A DNA stretch of 64,000 nucleotides from Takakia lepidozioides (taxonomy: Eukaryota > Plantae > Bryophyta). The position numbers and the translations under genes were made by a program. Below are positions 7,271 to 44,119 of this stretch, one piece after another (positions within the stretch are counted from its first letter, which is position 1; the number at the start of each line of letters is the position of its first letter). Where the stretch lies: positions 40,052,001 through 40,116,000 of the forward strand of contig CM060731.1 of NCBI GenBank assembly GCA_030704615.1, given 5' to 3'. A model generated the notes under the pieces. The model was not told the DNA's origin. It saw only the letters and a list, made by a program, of their open reading frames with translations, and did no database searches.

Positions 7271-8196
7271 ACAAGAAACCTGCATGGGTAGATGGTCAAC
7301 TGGAAGCCGCAGCAGCGGCGGCACAATTGATAAAATCAGGCACTGCTACTCAAGGTGATGTCATGCCTGACTCGTTTGATTCATGTTGACAAAGTTCAGA
7401 AGGTTCTAAGCTGCCCTAGTGGTATAGTTGCATCTCTCTATATACTGCCCTTCATTCTGTACCAATTGTCACATGTGAGGGGTCAATTGCTTTAAAGACA
7501 GACTGAAAATCTTAGAGAGTTCTTCATATGAACTGCTTGCACACTTAAATATGGCTATGGCACAGGGGGACTGCTACTGACAGGTGGATCCAACAAGGCT
7601 GTTTTGCTTCTCATCTTCTGAGCATTTGTTATTGTGTCACCTTCTTCAACACATTTCACCCTGTTTTTCCCTCTTATCAGAATCGGCCCTAAAGTTTTAT
7701 GTCAAGTCACATCTGCTAGTGGTTGAAGTATTCTGATACAGCACTGAAGGTGGCTTGCTCAAAGTTTGTGGAGCTTTGGTAGTTGTAGCTGGGTATAGAT
7801 GAGGTTGTGATCAAAAGTCTTGCTGCTCAGCTGCCCACCAGTGGTTTAAAAGGGATTTCACAGAAAAATCCAAGATCACCGGATTTGAAGAAGCGTACAA
7901 AGGAGGTCCTCTGGATTGAGAGCTGGTCAACCTCTTCTTGGATAAGATACAAGGTCAAACACAATCTGCTGATGGTTCTTTACCGCATGGAGCTCAGGAC
8001 AGAGAACACCACAGGTATTTGAGGGTTCCAACTCAAAAGAGATAAAACTCTAACAGTTTATTGTCAAGTAGATGGCTTTAAGTAGTTGTACAACTGTTGA
8101 TAAGTAGCTAGAAGCCTGTCCCCATGAAGAGATATTTCAGAACTTAGAGGACCAAAAGAGGGATTCAACAGGGACCCTTCTAGCACTCGTGGGTAT

Positions 8197-8420
8197 TTGA
8201 GGATACTATGTAAAGTAGGCCGACTGGAAGAGGCAGTGCACCTTTTGAACAAACCAGGCATGCGACCAGACTCCAATACATATGTATGTCTCTTGCAGGA
8301 GTGCATGAAAATGAAAGACATGGCTCAAGGAAAGCAGCTGCACATCCACAGTCAAAAGTGGATTCAGGCCAAATGTCCTTCTACTCCACACCCTTGTTAA
8401 CATGTATGCTAAGTGTGGTT
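8197..8420 (+). pseudogene. PPR gene N-terminal fragment
   Basis: LCKVGRLEEAVHLL...PDSNTYVCLLQECMKMKDMAQGKQLH, then frameshifted LVNMYAKCG. Confidence 0.75.
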
Positions 8421-9864: not shown

Positions 9865-9934
9865 CAGCACTAGAAGATGAAGATGTTTCATATGATATTA
9901 ACGATATTGTTTTGTCTCCTGCCACGACTACAAC

Positions 9935-10440
9935 ACATGTGCCTAGATTCAACCCGGTGGTGGAGTTCTTCCAGGAGTTGCGGAGGAACTACCAAGGTGT
10001 ACGGACAGAGAAGCTACGAAGTTTGCAAGACTTCCAGCGCAAACCCAATGAGAGCCTGCGAGAGGCGTACACTCGTATGAGGCGCTTGATAAGTGTGACC
10101 CAAGGGGTTACTGAAGCTCAGGCAATCCAGTTTTGGTATGGAATTTTGGATAAGGAGCTCAAGAGAAGGGTGCGAGATGCAACCCTGTTACAAGCAGCCC
10201 AACCCACATTAGCAGATGTGTTTCTGCTGGCTGAGCGGATTGAGCTCAACATGGTGGAGGAGCGAGTTGTTACCATTGGATTTGGCAAGGACATGCCTAC
10301 ACGAGGCGTAGCTGCCAGCCCACAGGCACAAGGAACCGCTCAACAGCGTGGTCAGGGGGGCAAGGTTGCCCAGCCCAAGTTCCATGGAGCTTACAGGTCC
10401 AACATATCACCCCTGGTTGCTGTTGGCCTGCAAAAGATGC
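9935..10440 (+). mobile_element. LTR retrotransposon gag fragment
   Basis: FNPVVEFFQELRRNYQGVRTEKLRSLQDFQRKPNESLREAY... closely parallels the minus-strand gag at 12236-13393. Confidence 0.85.
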
Positions 10441-10667
10441 CACGGGCCTCTGCACCTGTTTGAGACGGTTGCGGGTGTCCTCATTGCGAATGACTGCATC
10501 TCCTTCAAACAGAACAAACTTGTCCTCGCTAATGAACACATCCTGACGGGAGGGCCTCAAATGGATGAAACACTTGAAACAACAAGGTACTTGCACTCCA
10601 TCAAAGCTTCTACCATAATCAGGCATAATTGAACAATTTTTTACCATTTAGTTCCCTTGATGTTTTG

Positions 10668-11201
10668 GCATGTCTAATTTTATGCTCAACATAGTAATGT
10701 CGCTACCCCGATATCATGGTGCAGGAATACCACAAATTGGGGCAGAGACAGCTACTATTGTGAAAGTAGAAGTGAGTTATTTTGAAATTCATATGTTCTT
10801 TAGAGTCTACTTGATTTGAAAGTGGTGTAGGGTTCAAATAGCAGTCATTTAGCAGCTTCCGTCAATATCGATCTGCTTAGCGTAAATTGACAACCTTCCA
10901 AATGATGAGCAGGCTAGGACCCATAGCTCGACTTGAAGCTGAAGATGCAACCACTTTGTTGAGAAATCTTTTAGTCGGCATATATTATTTAGAAAAATGG
11001 AATCTGATCGTTAATTAATAACGATTATTTAATTTCACGTCGTCTATTCTGAGGGAAATTCTAGTATGCTGATAGTGGCTGGTAGATAATTGGCTTAGTT
11101 CCTTGGGCTCATTTTTCTTTCAAACAAATCAAGGATGCCTCTGCTAAGTGTTGTTTGTGTTGTTTTCTAGCCGGAGCAAGTAACCAAGCTAAAGAGTAAG
11201 G
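10668..11201 (+). repeat. About 530-bp near-identical inverted duplication, copy 1 (partner 28435-28959)
   Basis: Direct reverse-complement match from GCATGTCTAATTTTATG to AAAGAGTAAGG, with few substitutions and small indels. Confidence 0.95.
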
Positions 11202-11809: not shown

Positions 11810-13790
11810 CCTACACCTCGAAATAGACAATTATTGATGACAACGTTAGACTTGCAATAATTACCCTGCTCCTCAGCTCTGCTAGTGAATTGGTGAGGTC
11901 AATTACATATGGAGCCTGGCACACAGATGTGGCCGCTCCTAGCAGCACACTAGCTGCCGTAGCCTTGGCAATACTAGGTAGTGGTGCTGCCCGTGTAGCT
12001 CTCCCCAATGGCATAGTAACCTCCGCCTCGAGCGAGAACTAGGTGCCATGGATGGCATCGACACTGTCTCCGCCAATGTGAATGACTGAGGAAGCCTAGC
12101 TTGACGGCTTGCCTCCCCACGCTGTGGATCCAACTCCACCTCTGCACCTCGTGGCTTAGGAACTCGTGCTGCTCCTCGAGTCACGGCTGCAGCAGACTCC
12201 ACCTGCACTAGTGGTAGTGCTGCTCCGCACATGAATCACATGCCTCCCATATCTCCTCCCTCAAGAGTAGGAGGTGGACCATCCGGCCTTGGAGCCGGTA
12301 CCACCTGAGCTGTAGCCATGGCAGCAAGCCTCTGCTCTAGCTGCTGAAGCCGGTTGGCCATGCTTTGGTCAACACCCTGACCTCCGCGTCCTTGGCCATG
12401 TTGAGCTTGCCCTTGGCCTGCACCTCGTGCCTGCCCACCTCGTCCTCTCTGGGCTGCTCCACCTCGCCCCCGGACACCATTGTTCCCTTGGAACTGGCCT
12501 GGGCGCAACTCATGATGCAAATCATAACACTGGGCCTCTCCATGCCCGTGCTTGCCACAATGCCCACACTTCAACTGTGCAGGCTGTGCATGTGTTGGCC
12601 CTTTGCCTCCCTCTAGGCAATCCTTCTTGACATGGGGTCCTCCACATGTCCAACACACCACCTCTGCCCGTTGTTGGCCTGCAAATGAAGGGAGCGACCC
12701 CTGCATCTGAGGTCCTCTCTGTCTTTCCCTGGGCTTTATCTGGGCCCTCTTGTTGCCTTGAGCACGTTGAGGTAGTGGTTGGCTAGGAGCACCACTACCC
12801 CGTGGTGTCTCCTTAGCAAATCCCACCATGACCACTCGTTCCTCCACCATGTTGAGCTCTATCCGCTCTGCTAGCAAAAACATATTTGCTAAAGTGGGTT
12901 GGGCCGCTTGTAGGAGAGTTGCATCCCGCACCCTTCTCCTCAGCTCCTTGTCCAATATCCCATACCCAAATTGGACTGCCTGAGCTTCCGTAACCCCTTG
13001 GGTTACATTTATCAAGCGCCTCATGCAAGTGAAAGCCTCCCTCAAGCTCTCAGTAGGCTTCCGTTGGAACTCTTGCAAGCTCCGCAACTTCTCTATTTTC
13101 ACCCCTTGGTAGTTCCCTCTCAACTCTTCGAAGAACTCCACAACAGGGTTGAAGGCAGGCACGGGTACTAGTGCTGGTGCGGTAGTGGCTTGGGTGGACG
13201 TCGTAGCTACGGTACCACCAGTCCTACTAGTCCCACTGCTGCTTGCTAAAGCTGCCGGTGCAGCGGCAGGTGTAGCCACTGCCCTCGTGACTCTAGTGCC
13301 CCTAGTGATGGAGACATAGTCGGGTAACCAATACATCCTCCACTCCTCGATCTCAACCTCATGCCCCCGCCTGAACTCATGGTAATCATCCATAGGCGGC
13401 CCCTCAAGGTGCTGAACAGCCCCTTCTATGCCATGAAAGGCCGAAATAGTTGTGGATTGTGCATTTGCTGCAAATCACACCAACTATCAAAGTCTTGGAT
13501 AAAATCATCCAACTCGATGGTGCCCACCGCCCCAGAGTACCTTCGTGGCCCCTTGGTAGCTCCATACATCTCGTCCATTGTGTCCCACAACAATGGCAAG
13601 GAAACAACTTGCACCGCCGGTGTGAGTCCTCCTGATTCACAATCCAAATCAGAACCTTCCGTAGAAGACTCAGGAGATGAAGGTGGCCTAAACCGCACAC
13701 CTCGTCTCGTGTACCCACTAGTATCGCTAGTGCTCGAACCGGCACTGTCCCCAGCATCCGTGTTGACAAACTATCACTTAACCGGTCATG
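11810..13790 (-). mobile_element. Ty3/gypsy-like gag pseudogene (pol absent)
   Basis: Capsid-like region (FQRKPTESLREAF..MRRL) and two CCHC knuckles (CWTCGGPHVKKDC; CGHCGKHGHGEAQC). In-frame stops at 13426 and 12236, and a frameshift near 13410. Confidence 0.85.
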
Positions 13791-14404
13791 AACATGTCCC
13801 TAACCCCCTCTCCACAAGGTAACCGGGTAGAGAACCTGTTGCGGCTTATGGTTTGGAATACTAGGTTCCTAACATAGCCTACACCTGCACCTGCATCCAC
13901 CGCAAGCACTCATATGGTTGGCTAGTCATCACCTCCAACCTCACCACAGGAGAAACAATGATGGTCTGACTGGTCATCACCCCAGCCTCGTCATCGACAG
14001 CATGCTCTAGGACTGGCCGGTGATCAAACCCGGACCAATCACCTATAAAAACAAGCGCCCACACAAAACTAACATGGCGCACAGTCAAGCATGTAGGTAT
14101 GGAGGGGATCCAAACACAAGAAATCAGAACAACAACTCCCCCATACCAAAAACAACTCCACGGTGTCCTAGTTGCAAATTTGGACGTGACGCGGCGTAGA
14201 CGCGTCAGCGTCACGTCCGACGTCAGCGATGGACGTGCGTCACGTCACGTCCTAAACCGACGTTACTGTACATAAATATGTTTATTTTTTTACTTTACTA
14301 TTGACTATTTACTATGAGAACCGACGTGGCAGCCGATGTGGCCTGATTACGTGGACTTCTTTAATTATCTGTAAAATTCATATATTATGATTTATATTGT
14401 CAAT

Positions 14405-14880
14405 CATGCGACCGTCAGCAAAGGTTGGTCGGACAAATTTTTATTTTTTTTAAATAGGTACGACCACCAGAAAGGGGTGGTCGCACATTTTTTCTTATTT
14501 TTTAAATGGGTGCGACCACCAGCAGGTGGTGGTCGCAACATTTTCATTTTTTTTAATAGATGCGACCACAAGCAGAGGGTGGTCACACATTTTTTCTTTT
14601 TTTTAAATTGGGTGCGACCACCAGCAGGTGGTGGTCGCAACTTTCCATTTTTTTATAAATAGGTGTGACTACCAGCAGGTGGTGGTCGCAACTTTTTCAA
14701 TTTTTTTAAATAGGTGCGACCACCAACAGGAGATGGTCGTACATTTTTAATTATTTTTTAAATGGGTGTGACCACCAGCAGGGGATGGTCGCACATTTTT
14801 AATTATTTTTTAAATGGGTGCGACCACCAACTGGTGGTGGTCGCAGACTTTTTCTTTTTTGTTATTAGGTGCGACCGCTC
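14405..14880. repeat. Left subterminal array of the palindrome TGCGACCACC-N7-GGTGGTCGCA with T-rich spacers
   Basis: About 9 units with a period of about 51 bp. Confidence 0.95.
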
Positions 14881-14943
14881 CCTGGACACGTGACGAGGCG
14901 TGAATGGGCAGCAGAGGCGGTCGCACGCCAGGCCTCTCCAGGC

Positions 14944-14956
14944 AATATATAAGGGC
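14944..14956 (+). promoter_or_regulatory. Putative TATA box for the kinase cargo gene
   Basis: TATATAAGG just inside the left array, followed by a CT-rich leader and an ATG at 15241. Confidence 0.5.
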
Positions 14957-15240
14957 CTACCCCTCATTCCCAACCCACTTTTTCTCTCTCTCTGTGAGTG
15001 CGGTTCTGGGGCTTCTTGGAGTTTGAACTTCGGTGGCCAGGACTAAGCATGGGGGGGGGAGAAAGTGGATTTGTGCGGGGAGGAGTTTTTGCCTTTTTTC
15101 CCTGGGACTGCGGGAGAGTTTGCTTTGGGTACATACCAATAGAGGGTGAGGAAATTGGTCTGCTAGTATATAAGGTTATCAATAGTCTGGGTTTAGTTTT
15201 CCGTTACGAAGCCGCGTCTATTCCGCAGAGTACTTTCATC

Positions 15241-16600
15241 ATGTCCAGAAACGTTGCTTCGAACACAGTGTCAGGGGGTTCCTCGGGAAGTGGGCGTAAA
15301 AGTAGGAAGCGTAAGCATGCACATGAACGGGATAGTCAGGTCAACTAAAAAGACTATCCAAGCGCAGAGACCGCGAAGGTGGTGAAGCAAGTAGTGCTGG
15401 ATTATTTGAAGGACAATGACATAATGCGTTTGAATCTTTTGTATGTCCGACATGGGAATGAGGGGTTCATTAAATTCCAGCACAATATGGAGATGAGAAT
15501 GAGGGAGGCTTTGGCCGGGGATGAATGGGAGGGACAGGGCAAAGTTCCAGTTCACGAAATGGATAGAGGACCGGGCCCATGATGCCACATGGAATCTGAG
15601 GCAAACCATGGACAAGTTTGTTACGAGAACACATGTAGCTGAAGGTCGCATGCCAACTTCGGAGGATGAGTTGTTTGTGCTTGTGGATTGGTAGTCTGAC
15701 ATGGCAAATGCCCACGCCAAATGACGTACAAAACCACTTCCATGGAAGGCGGGGTCCTCGTCCGCGGATGCGGCATTGAACGTGAGATACATATCCACAA
15801 ACGCATAGGTACAACAACTCGACGCGCCCAAACATGGAGGGTATGGTACAATTCGGAGGGTTAGAATTGTTGGGGATCAATTCATTCCTCCATCTTGGGA
15901 GCTAGCAGGGAAAACGCCTAGGGAAATAAATGCTGAGCTTGCCAAAGTCCAACATAACAATGAGGCGTTGGCTGTAAAGTTCCATCATTTCGGCATCATA
16001 AAGTATTTTGCGTTGCATCCATGTCGAAATGAAGGTTAAACACATTGGTGGAATGGGGGGACCATACGATCATGGTTGAGTATTGACAGGAAATGGGAGA
16101 ATGATCGGGATAACAGGGAGTTAATGGAACGACGGGGGACGGAGCAAGAAATGCAGGAGGTCAACCGATTGGTTCGATTCCGACAGAATCGCACCCAATC
16201 GGCATGGGCGCTTTTGCACATCATGCTCAACGTCCATAATCACTACCTCTTGCACAACGACATGTCCCCCGACAACATCTTGTTACATTTTCCACAAGGG
16301 TCTGAAGATGTATACATCGGGGTATGCGATTGGGGAATGGCCTCCACGACAGATGACCCAAAAACCACGTTGTACATTTTCGAGAGCAGAGACAAGATGA
16401 TAAAGACTCTCACACATAGATGGTGGATTGCACCTGAAATTGCAATTGTTCATAATGTAGCCAACAACCAGTCAGATGACACACCTCGTAGGCCCCCTCT
16501 AACCGTGCCATCAGAGACCTTTGCAATTGGGAAGATAGCCCAGGCAATAAATGGGGGTAACACGTTCGATGCAAGCCTGTTTAACGATATGTCTACTTGA
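15241..16600 (+). pseudogene. Transposon-borne protein kinase-like gene, degenerate
   Basis: Kinase motifs appear in order across stops and frameshifts: Gly loop HGGYGTIRRV, ELAGK, NNEALA, WWNGGTI, catalytic LHNDMSPDNILL, CDWGMA, WWIAPE and SETFAIGKIA. Confidence 0.85.
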
Positions 16601-16914
16601 ACCTGTTTTGCTTCCGCTCTGAAAAACTTGTGTGTAGACACAGTAGAGTTGCGGTACAAACTAGAAAATGTTGTGAAACGTTTCATGACGGGGCTATTCA
16701 ATTGGCATGAGCCCACAAATTGCTGGAGGGTGGATAGAAACTTGTATACCTCTGACGCTACATCATGTTTGAATAAATGTTGTTTTCAATTGTGTTTGTC
16801 TCGTACCATAATGTTTTAATGGTTTGTTACTTGGCCATGGCACCTGGGTCCATCATATGGGATAATCAAGCACCACACCCACGAATCTTGAAGAGTGACA
16901 GTGTACCCCGGGTC

Positions 16915-19900
16915 AATGGGTGAACCAATCGTTCCCCTGCCAAATGATTTTAGATTGATTTGAAACTTTGGGAGTGTGTTGTACATGCCCTCTTTAAGTT
17001 ACCGGACAAGTATGAGGTCAATCTAAAACGGTTCTAAGGGTGAACCAATAGTTCCCCTATTAAATGATTTATGATTGAAATTTGGTTGAAAGGTTTAACG
17101 AGTCGTTCGGGGGGCAAATGATTATTTCTTCGCTTGCAACTTTGTGTACGTGATTTGTACGTACTTAAGCACATATGGACCAAAGTTGAACTTCAACAAA
17201 GTTGTTTGAATCGGTTATTCAAATTCATAAGGAGAAACAACATTTTCGCCTGCACATGAATTGTTTTTAATTCCATTCTGAAGCCATATGCTTGATAACA
17301 ACATGAAGAGTTGCATGCAAAATATCACCATGAACAGACATCATCTGCATCCAAAACACATTTTATTCCCTCATTTGCACTCCAAGGTGAAGTTATCTTC
17401 ATCTTCATGCACTCTTCATAGAGAGTTCTGTTATAGTGAGCATAGAGCAAAGGATGAACGTTTTTTTCCAAACATTTTTCTTTGGTACATTTTTTGGCAA
17501 GGATGTGGTGGTGTGAGGGTTCAACTCACAGAACAAAATCAAGTCAAAAACAAAATCATTGCGCCCCACACTCATTGTGCCCCACAATCCTATGCCCTCT
17601 AAATCATTTTATTTAGTAAAAATCCAGTTCAATTCAAAATTGGATGAAAGGGTGAACGGAAACTTCCCCGATGAAATGATATTTTATTGCTCCGAAACTT
17701 TGCAAGTGTCTTCTACATGCCTTACACGACTTTGAGAAGTATGACATCAATCTAAAATGGTTTAAAGGGTGAACCAATCGTCCCCCTACCAAATGATTTT
17801 AAATTGATTTGAAACTTTGCAAGTGTCTTGTACATGCCCTCTTACAGGTCTTTCACAAGTTTCAAATCAATCTAAAATGGTTGAAATGGTGAATCAATCA
17901 TGAACATATCAAATGATTTTGGAGTGCTTTAAAGCTTTGCAAGTGTCTTTCACATGCCATTTTAAAGGTACCGGACAAGTATGAGGTCAGTAGAATATGG
18001 TTGAAAGGGTGAACCAATCGTTCCACTATCAAATGATTTTACATTGCTTTGAAGCTTTGCAAGTGTCAGCCACATGCCCTCCTACAAATACCGGACAAGT
18101 ATGACGTGAATAAAAAATGGTTGAAAGGGTGAACCAATCATTCCGCTATCAAATGATTTTATATTGCTTTGGATGTCATTGCTTTGGTAATTCTAGCCCC
18201 CCAATGGCCTATTGTACCCCTTGAATTACAATTCAAAATGCAATTCAAGCCCTTAAAATTGGTAATGCCAGTCCCTAAAATGACCAACCCCGGCCGCCCC
18301 TCAAATTGTAATTTGAACCCTTGAAATTGTCAATTCCAACCCCTCAAATTGCAATTGAAGCCCCTGAAATTTAATTCCAACCCCTCAAATTGCACTTCTA
18401 GCCCCTGAAATGACAATTCCTGCTTCTCAAATTGCAACTATAGCTTGTGAAATGGCAATTGCTAGTGCAGCCCCTGAAAGTGGCAATTGAAGCCCCTAGA
18501 ATGGCAGTTTCAACCCCTCAAATTGCAAGTCAAGCCCCTGAAATTGGCAATTCGAGCCCCATAAATGGCAATTTCAGCCTCTTAAATTAGCTATGGGTGA
18601 ACCAATCATTCCCCTGCCAAATGATTTTGGATTCATTTGAAACTTTGCGAGTGTCTTGTACATGCCCTCTTAAAGTTACTGAACAAGTATGATGTCAATG
18701 TTAAATGGTTCAAAGGGTGAACCAACAGTTCCCCTGTTGGATGATTCATGATTAATCGTTAACGATTGATCTCATATTACACTGGGACCTATCAGAGGGT
18801 ACATTAAACACACTGGCCAAGTCTCAAAGCGAACGAAAATCATTTGGATGGGCAACCATCCGTCGGCCCATTGAACGAATTTCGGTTGATCTCATATTAC
18901 TCTGGGGCCTCTTCCATGGCACATTGAACATACTGGCCAAGTCTCAAAGCGAACCAAAATCATCTCGATGGCCAACCATCCATTGAGCCATCGAATGAAT
19001 TTCGATTGATCTGATATTAGTCCGGGACCTGTGAGAGGGTGTCTCGAACGTACTGGAAAAGTTTTGAAGCAAACAAAAATGATTTGGATGGGCAACCATC
19101 CGTTCACCCGTTGAATGTATTCCGCTGGATCTCCTATTGCTTTGGGACCTGTTGGACTGTGTTTCGCGTGCTCACGATTTTTTTTCCATTCCGTTTTTGA
19201 ATGGGGCGTGTAATGTTGCCATATGCAACGTGCGTGCCAAATTTGGAAGCGAACATAATTCATTTGGACCCAAAACCACAGTTTCTTCCCTGTTTTGCAC
19301 TCCAAACTTGATATGTGTTCAACTTCATGCACTCTTTATAGAGAGTTCTGCAAAAGTGAGCGAAGAGAACATTTTTTTTTTTGGGGAATTTTGGATTGGT
19401 CCAAATTTTGATGGGGGAGTAGTGGTGGGATGCTGGAAGCCGCAGAACAAAATTGAGCCAAAAACAAAATCGATACGTGCCAGAAACCCTCAATGAAAGG
19501 CAGTGCAAACCTATTTATTGGCTTAAAATTAATTTAAATTCAATTACATTATGGAATGGCTTGGTGTCGATGGGGAGGCAAATGATTTATTCGTCTGTTG
19601 TGTCTCCGCACATGTGTTGCACACATGTTCAAGCACATGCGGGAAAAAGAGGGGCTTCAACCACATCCGTTCAATGGGTGCAATAGCCGTGCACGCATTG
19701 TAGGATTTTTTTTTCGCAATGAATGCCTCATTGGCCCATCAAACGAGGTTACTTGATGTGCCGATTTCTGAATGCTTTCAAACTTTGCCATTGCATTGTA
19801 CATGCCATCTTAAAGGTACCGGACAAGTATGAGTTTGATTTAAAATATTGCAATGGGTGAACCAATGGTATCTTCATTCAATTTTTGATTGTTTTGAAAC

Positions 19901-19980
19901 TTTGCCAGTATATTGTACATGCCGTCAAACAGGTACCGAACAAGTATGAGGTCATTCAAAAATGGTTCAAAGGATGAACC
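16915..19980. repeat. Degenerate tandem-repeat block (two ~120-bp units and one ~21-bp unit)
   Basis: GGGTGAACCAAT...AAATGATTT...GAAACTTTGCAAGTGTC...ACAAGTATGA recurs at about 120-bp spacing (e.g. 17767, 17888, 18007, 18127). An AATTGCAATT-CAAGCCCCT unit occupies 18190-18590, and a second ~120-bp unit occupies 18765-19150. Confidence 0.85.
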
Positions 19981-20077
19981 TCGTATTTCCAAAAATCACG
20001 TAGACTATACAGTGGGTTGCACATTTAAGTTTTCGCAACCTGAGACCTTTGGCCTACTCCCTACGTTTCTAGCCTTT

Positions 20078-21575
20078 CTAGTCATCTTCATCTAGATTTA
20101 TTACTTCGTTGTCGTCATCTCCAGATGTTGATGAAGATGCTCCGGGTGTAGAGGACGTGCCTCCGCCAGTACGGAGAGCTCGAGCCTAGGCTCGAGTGGT
20201 CAAAGAGGGACCCAGTGTTGTGTGGTCCACCCTTGCCATCATGCGTAGCGTTCTAGGCGAGTGCTGACTCTCTTCCACATTTGCCAGAGTCGGGTGTGTC
20301 GCTCTTGCTACGGCGGCATGCAATTTTTCAATTAAATCTGATATGTTTGGAAGTGGCAATAATACCCCTGGAATAGGGGCAACTTGGTCACGTCATGTGT
20401 TCTGTCAATACTTTACAACACTCATGATGGCAGCCTTGAAATTGTCCAACACCTCCTCCTGCTGGGGGGCTCTGCGCAACTCTGGAAGAAATGGCCATTC
20501 ATCCCGACGAGGCACCCAGTACGTCTTATTCATATCCTCCCAACGGATGCTGGCGGCCTCCAACTCCCTCAGAAATAGGTCTCTCCCAATCGGTTCGCGA
20601 TTGTATGGGTCGTTTTTCACTGGCACCCACGGATCCTCAGGCAGTCGGAAGAATCTTTGTCTGGTACAGCTCCAATACCCTCCCAAGTTCCGGCAAAAAA
20701 ACTCCCTTTGGACTGGGTACCGTATGCCTCTAGCACGCACGATCATTTCCCAGTTGGATGTCACCCAAAATGTCACCGGATCTTTAACCCTAATTAACGT
20801 CTTTACATCCAAGGCGTGCATCTCTCTTGGAGCATCCCATGTCATTGTCTCCCCCCAGTGCTACCAATTTAAAAAATCGTAAGGCGATACATCTAATGAC
20901 ATGTTATACCGGTTGTACTCGTATCATGTGGGCATATTGTCTTGCAATCCAAACAACTCATAGAAACGTCGATGGATTGGTCCACGACAGTCAGGGCATT
21001 GGCTGGCTCGCATGGCTGCCGATATGAACCATGCGGGATGGAACAAATGGCCACATGAACCAAGCATATAGTCTCCCTCCGGTCCATAAGGGTTTAGGCA
21101 CATTGTGCACACCGTACCATCTGTTACCCATGACGCTGGATTGCTCTGTGGTATCCACGTCCGTTTATCCTCATGAATGTAGGATGACATCCTCAGCCTG
21201 GTGTCCCACTCCTCCTCTACTTCCAAATCCCAGTTTATGCTGTTATTGGTATCGGAAATTGTATGCACATAGTGCTCAAACATGGCATCCACATCAGCCC
21301 ATGTGGTGAATCCAGTGTACTTCGACGTGAATACATCACGTACAGTGTTGTGCCTTTGCAAATTAGCATAGATGCTATCTATATTTCGATTCGACAAACG
21401 TGCTGCACGTTGGAGGGAGGACAACGCTTCTTCTATCCGTGTATCCCGCGATGCTAGATGGCCCGCCCATGTCACCCAATTCCGCCAATTCCCCTTCAAC
21501 CATGGCCACGATTGGATTTGCATGGCATTTGAGTACCGATATGCAACAGCCCTAGCTTGCTCGCGTTCCAGATTT
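20078..21575 (-). pseudogene. Transposon-borne RING-finger protein gene, degenerate and 5'-truncated
   Basis: CTMC-x14-CGHLFHPAW-x9-CPDC, a RING-H2-like motif with one ligand replaced by W. ORFs 20924..21523 and 20405..20845 are in the same frame and read through TGA/TAG stops to an acidic C-terminus (NEVINLDEDD*) ending at 20078. Confidence 0.75.
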
Positions 21576-22345
21576 TATTTTTTTTAATAGGTACGACCAC
21601 CAGCAAGAGGGTGCTCGCAGATTTTTTATTTTATTTTTTAATGGGTGCGACCACCAACAGGGGGGTGGTCGCAGATTTTTTTATTTTTTTTAATGGGTGC
21701 GACCACCAGCAGGGGGGTGGTCGCAGATTTTATTATTTTTTATAGGTGCGACCACCAGCAGGGAGGTGGTCGCATAATTTTTCTTTTTTTTAATAGGCGC
21801 GACCACCAGCAGAGGGGTGGTCGCACAAATTTTGTTTAAAACAATAGATGCGACCACCACCTGCTGGTGGTCGCACTATTTTTCTTTTCTTTAATAGATG
21901 CGATCACCAGCAAGGGGGGGGTGGTCGCATAATTTTCCGATTTTTTTAAATCTACCAACAGTCAGTAGCTTAGTTGGTTAAGTGCACTGAGTGCGACCTC
22001 AGACGATTCTGGGGTCAAATCTTGCTACTTGATGGGTGTGGTATGGTTCGTGTGTGGTGTCCCATTCCTACGCCTCTTCGCGCATAAATGAAAGAGGTTA
22101 TTTTCTCCTCTCACTACTAAGGGGCCTGATTTGTGAGCTGTCGCTCCCAGGTGTTTCAAAAAAAAATTAAAAAAAAAAATCTGCGACCACCAGCAAGGGT
22201 AATTAGTAAATTAGTAAGTAGGTGCGACTACCAGCAGGGGGGTGGTCGCAACATTTTTCTTTTATTTTAACAGTTGCGACGACCGTTACTGGTGGTCACA
22301 CAATTGTTTTTTTTAAAATAGGTGCGACCACCAGGAGGTTGGTCC
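21575..22345. repeat. Internal array of the same 27-bp palindrome, oriented like the left array
   Basis: About 11 units with T-rich spacers, interrupted by a SINE. Confidence 0.95.
21954..22176 (+). mobile_element. tRNA-derived SINE, family B, copy 1
   Basis: A box TAGCTTAGTTGG, B-box-like GGGTCAAATC and a poly(A) tail, flanked by the AAATCT duplication (21948-21953 and 22177-22182). Homologous to 43905-44119. Confidence 0.8.
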
Positions 22346-22658
22346 CCTTGCACCTGTATGTATGTTTGGAGAGGCAGATGAAAAGCACATGTATCGACTC
22401 CCTATGGATTTGTGAAGGGGAAGATGAATGTTGGGAGCTGCACTTGACCTTTGTGGCTTTCGAAACCATAATAGAAATCAACAATGTAAAGGTAATGACG
22501 AAACACAAACACATGCACAACCACCAAACCCTTTCTTGGGTACACATATTCCACCATTTTTATTTCCGTACACGTATGCATGTACCCAAACTGAAACATG
22601 GATATCCATGGAAATATACTACACATCATGTGACAGGTCACAGAAGTTATAGCTGTAC

Positions 22659-25655
22659 CTAATTCTGTCTGGCACGACGACGATGGTATGATCTCACGTC
22701 TAGTACAAAATCTTCGTCCCCACTTACTTTACCCCCGTTCCCTTGATCAGTGCTAGAATCATGATCTCCATCTGTTCTTTCGTTTCTAGAGGCAACTGGC
22801 CGTTGGACCTGTCGTCGTCCTCGGAGTACGTTCAGTTGTCTCTCTGGTCGATTTTCACTCCTATCATGAATACCATCTAGGGTATCAGGCCTGTTCACAG
22901 GTCGGTCACCAACAAAAGGTTGCACAATTCTTTGCCGTTTCTGGGCTTGTCCCGGATTTCGTGGTGGCCTTGGAGCAGGTCTCGTATGAGGAAGGCTACT
23001 CGCATGTACATCAGAGGGGCCGACGTGAGAGGAAGGGGCATGAGATGGACCAGCGAGGGTCGAGGGAGCACGGTTCACGTGCGGACGTCGTCGGGCCAGA
23101 TGAAACGACAATGGCCGGTCGTCGTCATCCGATGGTTCGACTTGCAGAAGTCCCGCAACAGAAGAACCATCTCCCAGGATCGGAGTAGCGATGGAAGGAA
23201 TTACATGAGGGGGAGGGAGACTAGATGGACCAGCATGGGATGGACCGGCTTGAGAAAGAGAAACATGAGATGAAGCGGGGTGAGATGAAGCACGGTTCAC
23301 AGGGGCACGATGTCGGTGAAGGAATGACAACGGCCCGGTTGTCATCATCCGATGATTCGACCTGCACATCTCCCGCAGTCCGTGGAACTCGTGGTGGGGT
23401 AGAGTTGACCTCGACTTCATTGTTGAGAGTGTGCTCTACTGGGGGAAGGGGGTCCGCAATTGGGATGACACCATGTCGTAGTTCATCAACAACAAGGTCA
23501 TCGAAGGATGGATGCATTGCAGCATCATCGTCATTAAATTCATATGGGTCATGTGGAGGATTGCCCACATCATCGGACCCATCCCAACCGTCGGAGTCGG
23601 AGTCCCTCGCGGCGTCAGTGTCATCATTGCTGCTAGATTGGACCTCTGAGGCAGATTCTTCAGACAACAGATTCTTCTCGTACCATGCAGATGCATCACT
23701 TGCTCTCCTCTCTCGCAGTAGCCTACAATTCGTGTAGACATAAACCAATTTGTCAGCCCTGGCAGGATTCAACCTGTTTGCGAATCTTGTTGTGAACAAA
23801 CGAGTAACTGCTCCAGTTCCGCTCACATGACGAGGCAGAGCACACTTGAACAAGAATACGCTTTGCAATGGGAGCTAACGTTCTTGCTCCAGCTCCAATC
23901 AGATCCCACCATTCATGTGGCAACATGTTCATTGCTTTTGGATCCGACATGTCATGGAAAAGATTCTGCCGATCCGAGAAGCACTGGTACTCGGACAACG
24001 CTCGTTCTGCCATGTTCAAGGGCGTAAGTTGCATGATGACCCGTACAAGCCCGACTTTGGCATCCACATCGTTTCTCAAATCCATATTGTCCAGCAAGAA
24101 TGGATTCAATAAGGCCCCTGCATAATGCAAGTCCGTGCGAACCATCCGTTTGCGGTCGTAAAATGCATCCTCGGTCCTTGCCGCTAAATCATCATCCATA
24201 GAAAATGGAGGACGCCTCAATGATTGCATGTGCTTCTCAAGGTTTTCCAATATCAACCATGCTTTACCCATTATTGGTTGTTTTCCATCAAACTCCCACA
24301 AAGCAATCAACACCGGCTCCACCATATACACAAAATTTGCACATTTCGCCCAAAATCGTCAGAGCGAATGATTGCGTGGACCCTCCGACTTTTGCTCAAA
24401 GACTTGGACTTACGAGAGTCGCGTAAGGTGCCCACATATGCATCCCATTGAGGGTCAATGATCACCTGCTCCAGACCCGCCCTCACAGTCACCAGTCGAT
24501 CCACCATCAAAAAGTTTGTGGCAAAGCGGGTTTCACCCTGGTTCTTAAGGCTGTATTTGGGTTCATGCTTTCTAAACAGTGCCAGAGGGATGTGATGATG
24601 TGTACAAATGAACGTCACAACCAACTTTGCCATTTTTACTAGTTGTTTCATCCATGATTCTTTTCCACAATCCTCCAAAAGGAGATCAAAGATATGAGCA
24701 GCACACCCTTAATAATATAGATAGGGATATCGTACCATCAAAATATCGGCCATATTAACCATGTTAGATGCATTGTCCGTACACACTTGGACAATTTTAT
24801 CAGCTCCAATTTTATCGATGTAACTCGTCAACAACCCTGCTTGATAACGTGCATATTTTCTCTCCCCGCTTGTGTCAACGGATCCCAAAAATTGTTCCCC
24901 CGCAGGACATACCAGCATGACATTGAACAGTGGTCGATTAATAACATAACTCCAACCGTCCGCACATATAGTGCTTCCATATTTTCGGAGAGAATCACCT
25001 GTCTTTTCATTCACCTTTTGGGTGAGGTCAGACATAGCCTCTTCTAGCAATCCTGTACGGAGATCGCGATAACTCGGAGGTGTGTATGTGGACTTGGAAT
25101 CGGACGTGGCTTTGACAACAGCCACAAACGCAGGAAGCCTCGAGACATTGAACGGAATATTGGCCTCGTAGAAAATTGGGCCCACTTCTTATCCAGAGTC
25201 TTCCTGTGCGACAAATTTAAGCCTTATTGCATTGATTGTTGCCTCAATGGTCTGGTCCGTACAAGTGCTGGCGTACAATCGGGTGTTGCTCCTGACCCAC
25301 CGGCTTCTCAACGAACAACAGACGCCTCGCAAGAATCTCCCTGGGTACAACTCGGAGGGACGGTTTGCTTCGAACCTGGAGTGTTTGGCTCAGAAGCCGC
25401 GGCCACATCAAGAGACGGTGAGATATTGCCTCCACATTGGGCAAAGTGGGCTTTCACTCGCATGGAGGCTTTTGGGCACAAACTAACCCCTGCATTCTTC
25501 CCATCTCTGTAGCCGAGGTGATATAACATGCGATCTTTGCAACCCGCCAGCTTCAATGCACAAAGATTGCATTGAACACCGTCCTTTTTGTGCGGGTCTA
25601 TGGTGAACCAATGGATCCACTCCTCCCTCATCGTCACACCTAAAACCCTAACCAC
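22659..25655 (-). pseudogene. hAT transposase (BED zinc finger, DUF659, hATC dimerisation domain), frameshifted
   Basis: BED finger W..F...VQCNLC...RMLYHL; FYEANIPFN..STICADGWS..VQVCTDNASNM; ETRFATNFLM; WWDLIG...SASSCERNWS; then a long acidic/Pro-Ser-rich tail. It is split over several ORFs by stops and frameshifts. Confidence 0.95.
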
Positions 25656-25815
25656 AGAGTTAAGGTTGAATGAATAACACTAGTGTACTTGGTGGATTTG
25701 TCAAGAGCAATAGAAGTTAGAACAGAATGCGATGGCCCAACACTACGGCATCAATCTAAATGGATCAATGCACCAAAAGTGTTTGCCACAAAAGAAGTGA
25801 GGGGCATTGGGACCA

Positions 25816-25825
25816 CCTTATATAC
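25816..25825 (-). promoter_or_regulatory. Putative TATA box for the transposase
   Basis: Reverse-complement GTATATAAGG just inside the right array, mirroring the left-end TATATAAGG. Confidence 0.5.
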
Positions 25826-25869
25826 CCTCCAGCCTCCAAGCCTCACATGCTCGACGAATCAGATCCAAT

Positions 25870-26600
25870 GCTGCGACCGCTCCAGGTCGCACGAGGAAGT
25901 CGCATGTTATTTAAAAAAAAAAACTGCTGCGACCACCCTCATGCTGGTGGTCGTACCTATTAAAAAAAAAAAAATGCTGCGACCACCCCCATGCTCGTGG
26001 TCACAGAGATTATTTAAAATAAATAAAAATAAATAAAAATTTGCTGCGACCACCCCCCTGCTGGTGATCGCACATATTAAAAAAACAGGAAATTTCTGCG
26101 ACCACCCCCCTGTTGGTGGTCGCACCTATTAAACAAATAGAAAATTTCTGCGACCACCCCAATGCTGGTGGTCGTACCTATTAAAAAAAAGAAAAATGCT
26201 GCGACCACCCCATGCTCGTTGTCACAAAGAATATTTTAAAAAATAAAAAAATAAAAAATTCTGCGACCACCCCCTGCTAGTGGTCGCATTTATTAAAAAA
26301 ACAGAAAAATGATGCGATCACCCCTATGCTGGTGGTCGCAGATATTAAAAAAATAGAAAAATATTACGACCATCCTCTTGATGGTGGTCGCACCTATTAC
26401 AAATAAAATAAAAATTGTGCGACCACCAGTAGCGGTGGTCGCAACTGTTTAAGAAAAGAAAAAAAATGCGACCACCCCTGCTGGTGGTCGCATCTATTTT
26501 TTAAAAACAAAAAATGCTACGACAACCCCTCTGCTGGTGGTCGCAACTATTAAAAAATAAGATAAATTCTGCGACCGCCACCATTTGGAGGTCGTACCAA
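25870..26600. repeat. Right subterminal array of the 27-bp palindrome (A-rich spacers, inverted relative to the left array)
   Basis: About 13 units, with a period mostly near 51 bp. Confidence 0.95.
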
Positions 26601-27149
26601 TTTAACAATAATGATTTAAACATGACCTCAACTATTGGCGGATGGAGTAATTTATAAAACAATTCATTCAGTTGCCAAGGTGTCGCTTGGAATACAACGT
26701 GTCCACCTACGTGACATATTTTTCACGTAACTCATGTTTTATTGATTTTTCGGCAAAACTGACGTGACGTTGGTCGCGTCAGCGTTAGGTCCGACGTGAC
26801 ATGACGTGACATGACGTCACTAACACGTGCAACCCTGCACGGTGTTGCTCCTGCAAGGACACCCCAACCCAAACCCGGACTGACTCTTGCCTCCACCTAT
26901 GGAAAGGTCTTGGCCTAATGAGAGGGTGGAAAACTACGAGGAAGAGAAGCTAAAGCAATGCCTAACCCCAGCATGCCCTCATCCCAACACTCTTCCTCTC
27001 CTCTCTTCCCTCACTTGCATGACCATGGGAATATCATGAAGATACTCCTCAAACCGCCTTCCACGAGCGTCAAAATTCGGCCTTCAAGACCGCATGCCAG
27101 TCCTTAAGCAGTCCACCGGTGCTTCCATGAGTCAGCACAGGCCGTCCAC

Positions 27150-27830
27150 AGGTCAACACGGGCCACCACAGACCAGCACAGGCCCACACATATCACTGGT
27201 CATAGCCGTCACAGCCCCGCACAGGCCACAGCCTGTCACAGCCCTACACATGTCACAGGGTTACAGCCCCACAGGCCATAGCCCGTCACAGCCCTTCACA
27301 GCCCCAAAGGCCACATATCAAAGTCTGTCACAGCCCTACACATGTCACAGGGTTACAGCCCCACAGGCCATAGCCCGTCACAGCCCTTCACAGCCCCAAA
27401 GGCCATATATCAAAGTCTGTCACAGCCCCCAAGGCCACATATCACAGCCTGTCACAGCCCATCACAACCCAAAGGCCACAGACACAGCCTGTCACAGCCC
27501 CTCACAGCTCGTCACAGTCTGTCACATTCCTACACAGGTCACATGGGTCACAGCCCCAAAGCCACAGCCTGTCACAGCCCTACACAGGTCACAAGGGTCA
27601 CAGCCCCAACGGCCACAGCCCCTCACAGCCCCACAGACCACAAGGCACAGCCTGTCACAGCCCGCCACAGCCCATCACAGCCTGTCACAACCCCACAGGC
27701 CACAGGGCACAACCTGTCACAGCCCGTCACAACCCCACATGCCACCTATCATAGCCCATCACAGCCCTACACAGTCACAGGATCACGGCCCTACATGCCA
27801 CAGCCCGTCACAGCCCGTCATAGCCCCATC
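27150..27830. repeat. GTCACAGCCC/CACAG low-complexity minisatellite in the presumed retroelement 5' leader
   Basis: Dozens of (GT)CACAGCC units, including a ~93-bp tandem duplication at about 27235-27420. Confidence 0.85.
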
Positions 27831-28434
27831 CATGGCCACTCATGGCAGTTTAGCCATTTCTCCAAGGGGTTTAGCCACGCCAAGCTAGGGTTTGTGTCTC
27901 TTGGACTCTAGGCTTCTTTGCACCGAGCTATGGCGGCTGTGAAGAAATCAGCAAGGTATTCTTGCTCTTTCGGCTCCCACACATCACCAATAGTAGCCCT
28001 AAGCCATGAGGAAGATGGTTGCCACAAACCCAGTCTTCTTTCTCACTTAGACTCCCCAAACACGCCACTAAACTCAATGGCAAACAACCAAGCCTTGCTG
28101 GTTTCCAGCCCTTGTGAGCACTCATTCAAGCGTTTTCCTTGGCCATAACATTTGCTTTAGAGCCTATTCCAGCCCCTTACACCTGCCACTTCAAGACCCA
28201 CTAAAGCTTGAAAACAAAAGCCCAATGGACTGAAGGCATGCTCCACACATGCCCCACTCTCACCACAAGAGAATCAGCCCCTTTGCTTCCTTTCTTGCAC
28301 CCACCAACCTGAAAATACAAGCTTCAGCGGGCTGGAAGCATGCTCCACACATGCCCTACAGGGAAACCAGCCCCTTCCTTCATTTCTTGCACTCCCAAAC
28401 CTGAAAGTACAGGTGCATAGGGTGTAATTTGCCC

Positions 28435-28959
28435 CTTACTCTTTAGCTTGGTTACTTGCTCCGGCTAGAAAAAAACACAAACAACACTTAGCAGAGGCAT
28501 CCTTGTTTGAAAGAAAAATGAGCCAATTATCTACCAATTATCTACCAGCCACTATCAGCATACTAGAATTTCCCTCATAATAGACGACGTGAAATTAAAT
28601 AATCGTTATTAATTAACGATCAGATTCTATTTTTCTAAATAATATATCCCTACTAAAAGATTTCTCAACAAAGTGGTTGCATCTTCAGCTTCAAGTCGAG
28701 CTATGGGTCCTAGCCTGCTCATCATTTGGAAGGTTGTCAATTTACGCTAAGCAGATCGATATTGACGGAAGCTGCTAAATGACTGCTATTTGAACCCTAC
28801 ACCACTTTCAAATCAAGTAGACACTAAAGAACATATGAATTTCAAAATAACTCACTTCTACTTTCACAATAGTAGCTGTCTCTGCCCCAACTTGTGGTAT
28901 TCCTGCACCATGATATGGGGGTAGCGACATTACTATGTTGAGCATAAAATTAGACATGC
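28435..28959 (-). repeat. About 530-bp inverted duplication, copy 2 (partner 10668-11201)
   Basis: Reverse-complement match, flanked on both sides by TGCATAGGGT(TT)GTAATTTGC. Confidence 0.95.
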
Positions 28960-29502: not shown

Positions 29503-29923
29503 CATGCATAAATTCATTCGACTTCTGGGAGCGCTGTCCAGTTGGGGCATGCTGGAGACTCCGAGGAGACACACCAAACGTGTGGAAACACTTTTGTACA
29601 ACAACACAAATGTGCTCATTTGGTCAGTATTCTCACATGGACCATAAACCCAATCTGACCTTCAAAGGTTTTGCTCATGGCCTTTTCAACTCACACTCTG
29701 CACAAATTTGCACTGTAACACTACTGAAGACCAAATGATGATGTGGTCAAATGGTCGACACTAATTTGTTGAGTCTCATGTGCTGGCCCAAAAACGAGCT
29801 TTCTTGCTCTCTGTTCAGTACTGACACTACAAATCTGGTGAATTCAAATCGAAGTCTAGTCAGACAGTGCAGGTATTCCAGCAGTAGAGTGTCTTGCACC
29901 CAACTGATGTCAATAGTGATGTA
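29503..29923 (+). repeat. About 420-bp dispersed repeat, inverted partner of 45760-46209
   Basis: ATAAATTCATTCGACTTCTGGGAGCGCTGTCCAGTTGGGGCATGCTGGAGACT...AATAGTGATGTA matches the reverse complement, with moderate divergence. Confidence 0.9.
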
Positions 29924-30383: not shown

Positions 30384-33300
30384 TCATGATATCAGTGAAC
30401 CTGCCTTGTTTTGGTTACCAAGTAGACCCACAATGGTCTCCTCAACCAGATCGTTGAAAATTGCTTGCTCCAATTGCAGACCGATCCGGTCAACGTCTTC
30501 ATGGAAAGCTGCCCATGAGCCATCCTTGCTCATATCCAGGGCAATCAAGCCCTCTAAGTAGTCATCAGGTGCGTCCTCCCACAGACACAAACCTTGCTCA
30601 CAGATGTCTCTCCATGTCTCCTCTACAAGTTTCTTGCCACTCGCAATTGCGAACAGCTTTGGGGCCCTGGAATTCACCAATGGGTTGTGGTCAAAATGTG
30701 GCCCTAGCTTCCTCAACAGAACCTCGTTGACTGCATTGAACAATAGGCGCCTGTTTGAGGTCTCTCTCTTACTCCGTCTTTCAACTCGGGATACAAGGAT
30801 CTTGCCAGATCCCCCACCCACGCATGACTGAAAGCGCTGGGCAGCATAGGAACTCTCGAGTTCGTCAAAAATTCTCGGGCCCAAGGGGCAAGAGGGAGAA
30901 TGCCACCGGGTGAGCACCGAGGAATTGTCGTCCACTAAACCTGAGGCCGCTAGCACATTGCGCACATAAAGTAAGTCATCTTCCTTACCCTTGGCGCAGG
31001 GGATTCCCCTGATTCCTATCCTCTCAAATGCTGATTGATTTAGATGGGCTTTTGATAAGAGTCTGTCAGCCAAAAGCTTGTGCTGATAGGTTGAGCCGGC
31101 ACAGCTCTCCTGCGTTGCAGCTGTACGTGGCAGAGAGTCTCTTGGTGGATCCCTTGCAGATACAGCATCCGCAAGCACCAGGTCACTCTCTGGAACATTC
31201 TCCAAATCTGTTCGTGGTCTCTCACTTCCATCCATTTTCAGAAGACGCAAACGTATCCGCAACTCTGCACGAGTTCCCAGTTGTTAGGACACTGAAAAAT
31301 ATATCTTGCACACCAAAGGTAGCCGCCAAATGTCCTTTGACATGGAGCAACCAAGCATGCCTCTACTGACCTTCAGTTCCAGCAGTGATGGACAATGTTT
31401 GGAGAAAGTAATGTGTACTCATACTGACAGTACACAAATTGGCATGGCAAAAACTAACCTTGGAGATCATTAGTGATTTCCTTGAACTCGAGAGGACTGG
31501 GACTTCCTTCTTCAAATGGGGATTCCAAAACAGAGATTGGACTCGGTTGTCCACCCTTGTCAATGCTGAAGTCACCCCCTTCATCTGAGTTATCCTGAGT
31601 GATGGTCCATTGTCTTGGAATTCTTCCTTTTTGCTCAACCTGCAGAAGAACGCATCAGTCAGCTCACCAGAAAGAATTTCTAATAACAAACTGATTGATG
31701 GTGAGCGTGAGCATCTTCTAATCAGCGGCAAGTGCTTAAGAGTGTTTCTGTAGGCACTGATGAAAGCAAGCAGCTAAGTTTCTCTCTACAGAATCTTCCA
31801 AGGCTCTGCAAGCATACTTTCAATGTAGTGTGACAGCAACCTTGGGCAGAATTTGAGAGTGCAACTCATGTCCATGTTAAAGAGTTGCAACACTAAAGGC
31901 ATTCTCACCTCAGACTGTAAAACAGAGACAGTGGCATTGTGCTGATCTCTGGTTGCCTCCCCGGCATCATCACGCAGGAGAGCCTGGGGTGTCAACTGAG
32001 AGAGAGCTTCCAGAAACTCCTCACATAATTGTGCGCTTGGGTTGGGACCATTCCTCACTTCATTACTGGCTCCCAAAGCTGGAAGACAGTCTTCCGGGTT
32101 GCTTATAACTACCAGAGCCAAATCTCCAACACTACCAGGCTTGTGGGGTAGGGTGCAGTTCTCTGCATGGGTCCCTCTGTCACCTACACAATTTACACCA
32201 CTTGATGCCGACGGCTGTGGAGCATCAGCTTCCTCTTGGGCAGCAGCACATGCCAAAACAGGAGAGGAACAAGGTAAGGATGTATGGGGAGTGCTGGCCT
32301 CCTTAAGTGAGGCTTCGGTTTTCTTCCTGGTCACAGAGAAAAACCCCCTTCCCCTTTCAATTGTCTGTCCCCGTGTTTTTGGAATACCAGCACCAGCAGC
32401 CTTGGGTGTCTTGGATTTGGCTTTGGCACCAGCTTTTGCCCCAGTAGCCTTGTGATATTGGCCAGGACCAGTGGTGGCCGTCTTGATTGATACCTCTGCA
32501 CTACCTCGCTCATGCGAAAAGGCCGCGTTGGGGACTGATCTACACCTTGACAGCATTGGCCGGTGAGGGCTCTCTTTATCCTCTTCCCTCTTCCTTGGAC
32601 TCCTTGAATGGTCAGGCCCCTTCTTCATCTTCACAGAAGGATTAGTCTCATTGGCACTGCTGGCATCAGGAGCATTGCTTGTGATCAATGGAGATTTGGA
32701 GGACTGTACAGCTGACGAGTGGGGGAGACCTCCAAACCCATTGGCCTCAGGAGCCACAACAACTTTATTGCCTACCCTACCCTCCACTCTGTTGGACATC
32801 AGTTCCACTGCGTGATCTGCATATGGTGCTCTAAGTTTCTCTGGAGTTTGTTTCTTACTGATCACTTTGGTAGCAGCTGCTTCTTGACCTTGAGTGAGAT
32901 GTGGGGAGCTTGGAAGGCTGGTGCATGACCTGCTGACTTGGTCCCGGGCAAGCCTTACAGAGGGTGTGGAGGTCCCTTCCCCATCACTGTTGCAGGTGGC
33001 ATCCAAGTCCCCCATCACCCTTTGGGCAGAGACACGCTTTCCTGTGGACCGACTTCTGGTCAAAGTAACAGGACCAAGTCTTGAGGCATCCTTTGCTTGC
33101 ACTGCTGCAGCTGCCTCTCGGGCATGTCTAGCAATTTCCCGGGCGATCTCTTTGGGGTCTTGACAAGAATTTCGTAAAGAATCCCTGCTGATTGCTTTGG
33201 AGGATCGTGTCTCATCCCTTGGGCGCTCGTACTCCTGCTGTCTAGCTCTCTCTTTGACCTCCCGAACCAGTTCTCCAGCACCTTCCCTGTTAGTCTCTCT

Positions 33301-43904: not shown

Positions 43905-44119
43905 CGGAAATTTAAAAAGAAAACATGGGAACGACAGCTCACAAATCCGGGCCCTTAATTATAGGTAGAGGAGAAAGTCGCCGTGAAGGCTTTCTGATGG
44001 GACACCGCCCAAAGGAACGGGTTGAAGAATATACCACAGCCATCAAGGTAATAGGATTTGACCCTAGAACCATCTGGGTGGAAATCATTGTACTATCCAA
44101 CTGAGCTACTGACTGTTGG
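43905..44119 (-). mobile_element. tRNA-derived SINE, family B, copy 2
   Basis: Reverse complement CCAACAGTCAGTAGCTCAGTTGG...GGGTCAAATCC...GATTTGTGAGCTGTCGTTCCCA matches the head and tail of 21954-22176. Confidence 0.8.

Follow-up and report, generated by a model that had tools for sequence, protein, structure and literature searches.

Why should a hAT transposon carry genes for a protein kinase and a RING-finger protein? hAT elements are textbook one-gene transposons, and the question is raised by a stretch of 64,000 nucleotides from Takakia lepidozioides (assembly GCA_030704615.1, contig CM060731.1, positions 40,052,001 to 40,116,000), the whole of which is called the window in the following. 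The original prediction, made from the letters alone, described positions 14167-26837 as one hAT unit with a transposase, a kinase and a RING gene, and suggested a multi-gene family in which the additional genes regulate the transposase or counteract host silencing. According to our analysis, the element is almost certainly a dead member, with an internal deletion, of a land-plant hAT lineage that carries several genes. Beside the transposase, this lineage has a fixed accessory set: an atypical Ser/Thr-type kinase of the non-RD class, and one or two proteins that share a conserved domain of ~150 amino acids at the N-terminus (N-domain) and of which at least one also contains a coiled coil and a RING-H2 finger. 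Equally well supported is that each gene of the lineage has its own promoter, in which a GC-rich motif peculiar to the family is repeated in tandem and, where one was found, a TATA box follows.

A hAT lineage with several genes

The element is enclosed by an exact 8-bp target site duplication (TSD), as had been claimed. CACGGTGT stands on both sides, and no other occurrence of this 8-mer was found on the + strand. The right end reads CAGGGTTGCA, with which the left end agrees at 7 of 10 positions, differing at positions 2-4. ACGT-rich clusters near the two ends (49 and 61 per kb versus 1.7 per kb in 27000-64000, i.e. ~30-fold) and 52-bp arrays at both ends provide the subterminal repeats by which hAT elements are recognised. 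The transposase pseudogene matches DUF659 (E 6.5e-27) and Dimer_Tnp_hAT (E 0.001), and the D, D and E motifs are visible in its translation. Membership of the hAT superfamily is supported by every feature tested, since the 8-bp TSD, short terminal inverted repeats (TIRs), subterminal repeats, BED-like finger, DDE core and C-terminal dimerisation domain are shared with Ac, Tam3, Hermes and the DUF659-type plant hATs. However, the lineage differs from these elements by its size of 12-17 kb, its three to four genes, internal promoter arrays and the conserved kinase and RING-H2 proteins. Ac encodes a single transposase. Hermes comprises ~3 kb with a single transposase (PMC10368747), and Ac is given as 4.6 kb in PMC3260210. 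Our literature search, whose coverage was incomplete, returned no hAT element with kinase or RING cargo and no transposon-encoded kinase/E3 ligase module.

The two accessory pseudogenes match Pkinase (E 8e-8) and zf-RING_2 (E 5e-5), so that all three genes proposed for the unit were recovered by profile matches. Their decay is likewise evident, with 6 stops and one 2-bp frameshift in the kinase, 5 internal stops and an altered sixth zinc ligand in the RING gene, and 3 stops and at least 3 frameshifts in the transposase core. The notion of a single unit could be kept insofar as one TSD-bounded element exists; it needs correction in that the left TIR is degenerate, the 5' half of the RING gene is lost, and a short interspersed nuclear element (SINE) and a 984-bp unit are nested inside. 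The window RING gene covers residues 543-916 of an intact relative of 1039 amino acids and ends abruptly at the internal array, and a profile search of the window for the N-domain gave no match. Because one contig of an independent sample continues the gene 323 bases further 5', the comparison indicates that the window gene was truncated by a deletion at about 21570, by which the N-domain and promoter were removed. With three broken genes, a deleted N-domain and a degenerate left end, the window copy is incapable of the functions proposed below. The element is multi-copy, 6 kb of it being covered by 30,508 contigs from one run. Compared to contigs of a second sample the window copy shows 2.2% divergence with a strong C-to-T/G-to-A bias, as would fit methylated dead DNA.

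Intact, intronless relatives with 34-50% identity join the kinase, RING and transposase genes in three independent contigs (L010/L015, L019 and L103; relatives are designated by L numbers), and their intact open reading frames (ORFs) bear out the view that the cargo lacks introns. L010 comprises, between two TIRs, the kinase (36% identity to the window), an extra gene of 343 amino acids, the RING gene (34%) and the transposase (50%). An identical TIR is found with three left flanks (L002/L003/L010) and three right flanks (L010/L015/L017) in sister contigs, and these multiple flanks together with the TSDs suggest past mobility of the lineage. The same four genes occur in L019 in differing orientation, whereas in L103 the kinase and the transposase are accompanied by two RING paralogues, and L011 has a kinase and a transposase with no RING gene on the contig. 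In L102 of Ceratodon purpureus, the fetched 10 kb contain a TIR, the kinase, an N-domain gene as the extra gene and the RING gene. The decayed L049 element is complete at 12.1 kb and has the order transposase-RING-kinase. CAGGGTT(G/A) ends are common to L010, L015, L049, L102 and L103. Hence the three genes co-occur between the same TIRs in other genomes, in L049 with a different exact 8-bp TSD (ATTCAAAA); the TSD was unmatched in the collapsed metagenome contigs L010/L015 and in the older copy L047.

A hAT transposase was present in 16 of 43 kinase loci with a length of at least 10 kb, a RING gene in 14 and both in 10, counts whose weight is lowered by the partly redundant samples from which they come. 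DNA outside the kinase is shared with L049 in 32 of 41 kinase loci. Wherever the host is named, it is a moss; the Ga01162xx/Ga02092xx samples we take to be peat-moss metagenomes, and the Ga03349xx samples are presumably moss biocrusts. Two further loci deserve mention. L101:9270-21491 from C. purpureus shows a TIR-like end followed by an intact kinase, together with a RING gene in decay, a second, divergent kinase and a transposase fragment, and consists of two families, nested or adjacent. L020:9827-13224 bears a frameshifted RING gene of the family at the contig end next to bacterial-looking genes and is probably a chimera of metagenome assembly.

In comparisons between families, saturation has been reached at synonymous sites (proportion of synonymous differences 0.70-0.84), and the non-synonymous divergence (dN) amounts to 0.41-0.97 for the kinase, 0.63-0.69 for the RING gene and 0.42-0.63 for the transposase. 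The cargo is thus constrained about as strongly as the transposase, and with dN far below the saturated synonymous divergence (dS) the comparison shows purifying selection. A ratio near 1 among dead copies, which the original prediction had regarded as contrary evidence, would be a weak refutation, because it is expected of any transposable element gene, and the comparison between families is the valid one. Versus its 97% identical sister copy the window kinase shows 8 synonymous and 13 non-synonymous differences (dS 0.042, dN 0.019), too few to weigh. The kinase and transposase trees have the split {window, L010, L019} versus {L011, L049 group} in common (support 100/99 and 95/95) and the RING tree does not conflict with it, so the gene trees are congruent at supported splits; it tells against a stronger claim that the trees were drawn midpoint, with one informative split, four lineages and short rows for decayed RING genes. 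Altogether, linkage, TSD, intronless ORFs, dN/dS and trees support a multi-gene hAT family, and the cargo is ancient rather than a chance capture.

The accessory proteins and their promoters

The kinase forms a family of its own, with single-ORF proteins of roughly 490-650 amino acids when intact. Their best match among solved kinases reaches only E 3e-5. The catalytic loop reads HNDLSPxN, i.e. is of the non-RD type, and the Mg-binding motif is DWG. Since the Gly loop, the beta3 Lys, the alphaC Glu, the catalytic Asp/Asn and the DWG Asp are kept in at least 90% of the aligned rows, the intact kinase is probably active. A search of the phage collection for the kinase gave no match. One family kinase, P0264, is labelled as belonging to a Bacilli metagenome-assembled genome, where it lies on a 2.9-kb contig that is likely mis-binned plant DNA.

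For the RING protein, a search with the 199-aa piece from the window came back empty, which the length filter accounts for; the intact relative returned 23 homologues. In the intact layout, a variable linker joins the N-domain to the coiled coil, after which come the C3H2C3 finger and a C-terminal region that is conserved. Zinc ligands and the RING fold are present in intact relatives, and the finger model superposes on the RING-H2 E3 ubiquitin ligases RNF165 and EL5 with a target-normalised template modelling (TM) score of 0.70-0.79 and a root-mean-square deviation of 1.6-2.1. A structure search (VIA) with the C-terminal region gave generic helical bundles and no clear match. The N-domain is contained in both RING paralogues of L103, and it also occurs as a stand-alone gene without RING in L010, L019, L102 and L024.

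The palindrome array TGCGACCACC-N7-GGTGGTCGCA occurs three times in the window element, once 5' of each gene. The 800 bases ahead of every gene are densely occupied by a single GC-rich motif that is sparse elsewhere in the element; in the window it is GCGACCAC, with 13-17 occurrences per promoter versus 6-7 elsewhere. The corresponding motif is CGACCG in L010, GCGGACG in L019, GACGGCC in L102 and CCAGCCCG in L103, so that family-specific arrays were seen in five families including the window, with one 6-mer family prevailing across all promoters of an element and switching between families. The TATA predicted ahead of the kinase was found as a TATATAAG box at 14946, and in four kinase promoters (window, L010, L011 and L102) a box of this type follows.

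What the accessory genes may do

The N-domain gives a first hint. Its predicted model is confident (predicted local distance difference test score 87), and the nearest predicted structures are the retroelement domains ATHILA ORF1 (PF03078, TM 0.48) and Transposase_32 (PF20167, TM 0.47) over ~105 residues; in the ranking the top five are clusters from plants or transposable elements with TM 0.41-0.48, and all others stay at or below 0.34. PF20167 has been described as a relative of ATHILA ORF1 (PMC11728184). Both are accessory domains of Ty3 retroelements, whereas the N-domain shows no sequence match to them and is fused to RING on a DNA transposon. The ATHILA-ORF1 likeness of the modelled domain is therefore a weak lead and not an assignment. 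Nevertheless, the suggestion of regulation or anti-silencing is strengthened, because family-specific promoter arrays coexist with an ATHILA-ORF1-like N-domain in the intact RING proteins.

The closest parallel is provided by the VANDAL elements, which are multi-gene DNA transposons as well and have non-coding tandem motif arrays differing between related families. The targets of VANC are tandem repeats that differ among related elements and lie upstream of the transposase (PMC5735166), and with KIU/VANC-Ulp1 there is a precedent for a transposable element DNA reader fused to an enzyme of a ubiquitin-like system (PMC13317346), Ulp1 in KIU compared to RING in the hAT lineage. In contrast to VANDAL, the window lineage has a hAT instead of a Mutator (VANA) transposase, its own TIRs, an 8-bp TSD and a kinase, and Pfam gave no match to DUF1985 or DUF287 in the RING proteins or the N-domain. 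By analogy, the lineage may work like VANDAL/VANC without being a member. In the Spm/CACTA elements a separate accessory gene also stands beside the transposase, and its product TnpA activates cognate copies sequence-specifically. However, TnpA is a helix-turn-helix protein derived from the transposase, whereas the hAT accessory proteins are unrelated to theirs, and superfamily and TSD differ.

The proposition that the accessory genes constitute a self-activation (anti-silencing) system of the VANC type has in our view equal chances of being right or wrong. In this system, the N-domain would bind the motif arrays of its own family, and the fused RING would ubiquitinate chromatin or silencing factors at these arrays, by which the CG/CHG-rich element promoters would be kept transcribed. 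The circuit would be tuned by the kinase, whose substrate would be the RING protein, the transposase or a host factor, while the transposase would bind the ACGT-rich clusters and the CAGGGTT ends for cut-and-paste. Less likely than not is a more far-reaching version: a sequence-specific anti-silencing circuit in a bryophyte hAT lineage, possibly common to Mutator-like elements, in which a DNA reader resembling ATHILA ORF1, joined to a RING E3 ligase, and a dedicated kinase co-evolve with the promoter arrays.

It must be mentioned that several observations weigh against such a circuit. TM scores below 0.5 for the N-domain matches are no proof of a common fold. No match to the N-domain was obtained in PDB sequence, Foldseek and VIA searches or in Pfam, and a feature search of the ESM Atlas returned nothing; the literature search found no paper presenting ATHILA ORF1 as an anti-silencing factor. 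On the surface of the RING finger for binding of the ubiquitin-conjugating enzyme (E2), the Arg after the last Cys is retained but the helix Trp is missing. Many RING-H2 ligases use this Trp for E2 binding. In the decayed L049 family, no motif array is clearly visible in the promoters. The RING gene is covered by no contig in two putative RNA runs, which fits silence and proves little. Finally, the arrays could be binding sites of the transposase, because transposases alone are able to activate their own elements (bioRxiv 10.64898/2026.08.24.746577).

This last point leads to a different, unlikely explanation, a post-translational autoregulation in which the kinase phosphorylates the long Ser/Asp-rich tail of the transposase and RING ubiquitinates the transposase, thereby setting its level and timing, whereas the arrays are read by the BED finger or host factors. 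It is consistent with the binding of short subterminal repeats by the BED domains of Hermes and other hATs (PMC10368747), with self-activation by transposases, and with the long acidic or Ser-rich tails of all lineage transposases. However, arrays are also present far from the ends, ahead of the accessory genes, and the termini have a separate ACGT-rich cluster; moreover, the stand-alone N-domain genes of L010, L019, L102 and L024 would be left unexplained.

Rather improbable is a trans-acting counter-defence, in which a general host silencing protein, such as a methyltransferase, an Argonaute or a Polycomb subunit, would be degraded or disabled by RING and kinase, the N-domain serving as substrate adaptor instead of reading DNA. 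The intact RING-H2 fold and kinase residues would suit this idea, as would an N-domain without recognisable DNA-binding fold in the PDB, but it leaves the family-specific arrays at every promoter unexplained, and global de-repression would presumably be costly to the host.

We consider it still more doubtful that kinase and RING represent a portable cassette of several transposon superfamilies with a generic target and hAT as one vehicle, a view that is compatible with the anti-silencing circuit but would lower its hAT specificity. It is suggested by 2 of the 9 kinase loci sharing no DNA with L049 (L039 and L093), which lie 6-7 kb from Mutator-like-related ORFs. These neighbours may be there by chance in repeat-rich DNA, and the tree of the kinase agrees with that of the hAT transposase at the supported splits.

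In the window itself, two long ORFs at 60348-63244 (-) with a SWIM-like CxCx(n)CxH motif and no Pfam match probably represent a Mutator-like transposase; related ORFs lie near the L039 and L093 kinases.

That host kinase and RING genes were captured at random, or that they belong to unrelated elements nested in the unit, can practically be dismissed: a spacer with nested repeats (SINE, 984-bp unit) and the variable gene order and orientation between families would allow it, but L010, L019, L049, L102 and L103 refute it, as an orthologous, intronless set under purifying selection occurs in at least 5 divergent families with each gene behind the element's own array, and the closest solved kinases are distant. 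Pack-MULEs and Helitrons also hold extra coding sequence within DNA transposons, whereas the hAT cargo consists of full-length, intronless orthologues conserved across genomes and not of recent host fragments.

Nested repeats, surroundings and wider meaning

Table 1. Features of the hAT element in the Takakia lepidozioides window (positions are those of the window).
Feature	Position	Strand	Remark
Left 8-bp TSD CACGGTGT	14159..14166	+	
Left TIR	14167..14176	+	degenerate (7/10 compared to right end)
ACGT-rich subterminal cluster, left	14177..14330	+	likely bound by the transposase
52-bp tandem array before kinase	14407..14876	+	palindrome TGCGACCACC-N7-GGTGGTCGCA
TATATAAG box	14946..14953	+	kinase promoter
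Protein kinase pseudogene	15241..16750	+	Pkinase match; 3' end approximate
Spacer	16913..19980		with 120-bp and 21-bp arrays
120-bp arrays	16913-17076, 17629-18171, 18582-18753, 19763-19980		
21-bp array	18293-18588		
984-bp high-copy unit	18763..19746		satellite-like
RING-H2 pseudogene	20078..21569	-	zf-RING_2 match; 3' half only
Internal 52-bp palindrome array	21569..22340		5' side of RING gene, split by SINE
Nested tRNA-like SINE	about 21942..22176	+	A-rich tail
hAT transposase pseudogene	22659..25631	-	BED-like finger, DUF659, DDE residues, dimerisation domain, long low-complexity tail
TATATAAG box	25817..25824	-	transposase promoter
52-bp palindrome array before transposase	25899..26576	-	
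ACGT-rich subterminal cluster, right	26690..26827	-	
Right TIR CAGGGTTGCA	26828..26837	-	
Right 8-bp TSD CACGGTGT	26838..26845	+	

The positions of all features are compiled in Table 1. The 984-bp unit has a summed depth ~50-fold above that of the element, with joints running from the unit's end to its start. It contains inverted, diverged 120-bp repeats and is in part 71% alike to 17332-17557, and it may be a major satellite that was derived from or inserted into the 120-bp spacer repeats. The SINE label is based on A/B-box-like sequence, the A-rich tail, depth and the existence of a further copy at about 43920-44130 that is 81% alike; a comparison with Rfam gave nothing at gathering score, and the sequence is abundant in both putative RNA runs. 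An inversion of the RING gene relative to the family was considered and is unsupported, with contigs of the other sample being collinear on both sides; since no contig spans 19746, it is improbable rather than refuted.

Outside the element, a ~530-bp repeat is present in two 96% identical copies of opposite orientation (10668-11201 and 28434-28959). This inverted pair (526 bp) was rejected as the TIRs of a larger element on account of the right copy's own flanking duplication of ~20 bp, which suggests a recent retroposition of that copy. Two ORFs at 12236-13393 (-) and 9912-10463 (+), 82% alike in DNA, are called gag-like by their CCHC knuckles and have no Pfam match; the hAT element lies directly upstream of the former. 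In the right flank of the element lies a complex CACAGCC-rich tandem array (27094-27911). Furthermore, the window comprises a decayed PLS-type pentatricopeptide repeat gene with ~303-bp repeats (4450-8400), a host gene with VARLMGL, DUF3741 and DUF4378 domains (LONGIFOLIA/TRM-like, 30384-34398 (-)) and an inverted pair of ~440-bp repeats, 87% alike (29508-29923 and 45761-46206). The pentatricopeptide repeat and DUF4378 genes mark the host as a land plant.

The known transposon anti-silencing factors, VANC and TnpA, come from flowering plants and from superfamilies other than hAT. The retention of kinase and RING across very divergent families (25-55% identity) implies that they were selected for a function advantageous to the element. 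If the proposed circuit is true, the concept of anti-silencing would extend to bryophytes and to hAT elements, and phosphorylation and ubiquitination would be added to its tools. The idea is directly testable, as intact genes exist (L010, L019, L103, and kinase and RING in C. purpureus, a transformable moss) with a predicted motif for each family. Moreover, readers with differing motifs could serve targeted epigenome editing.

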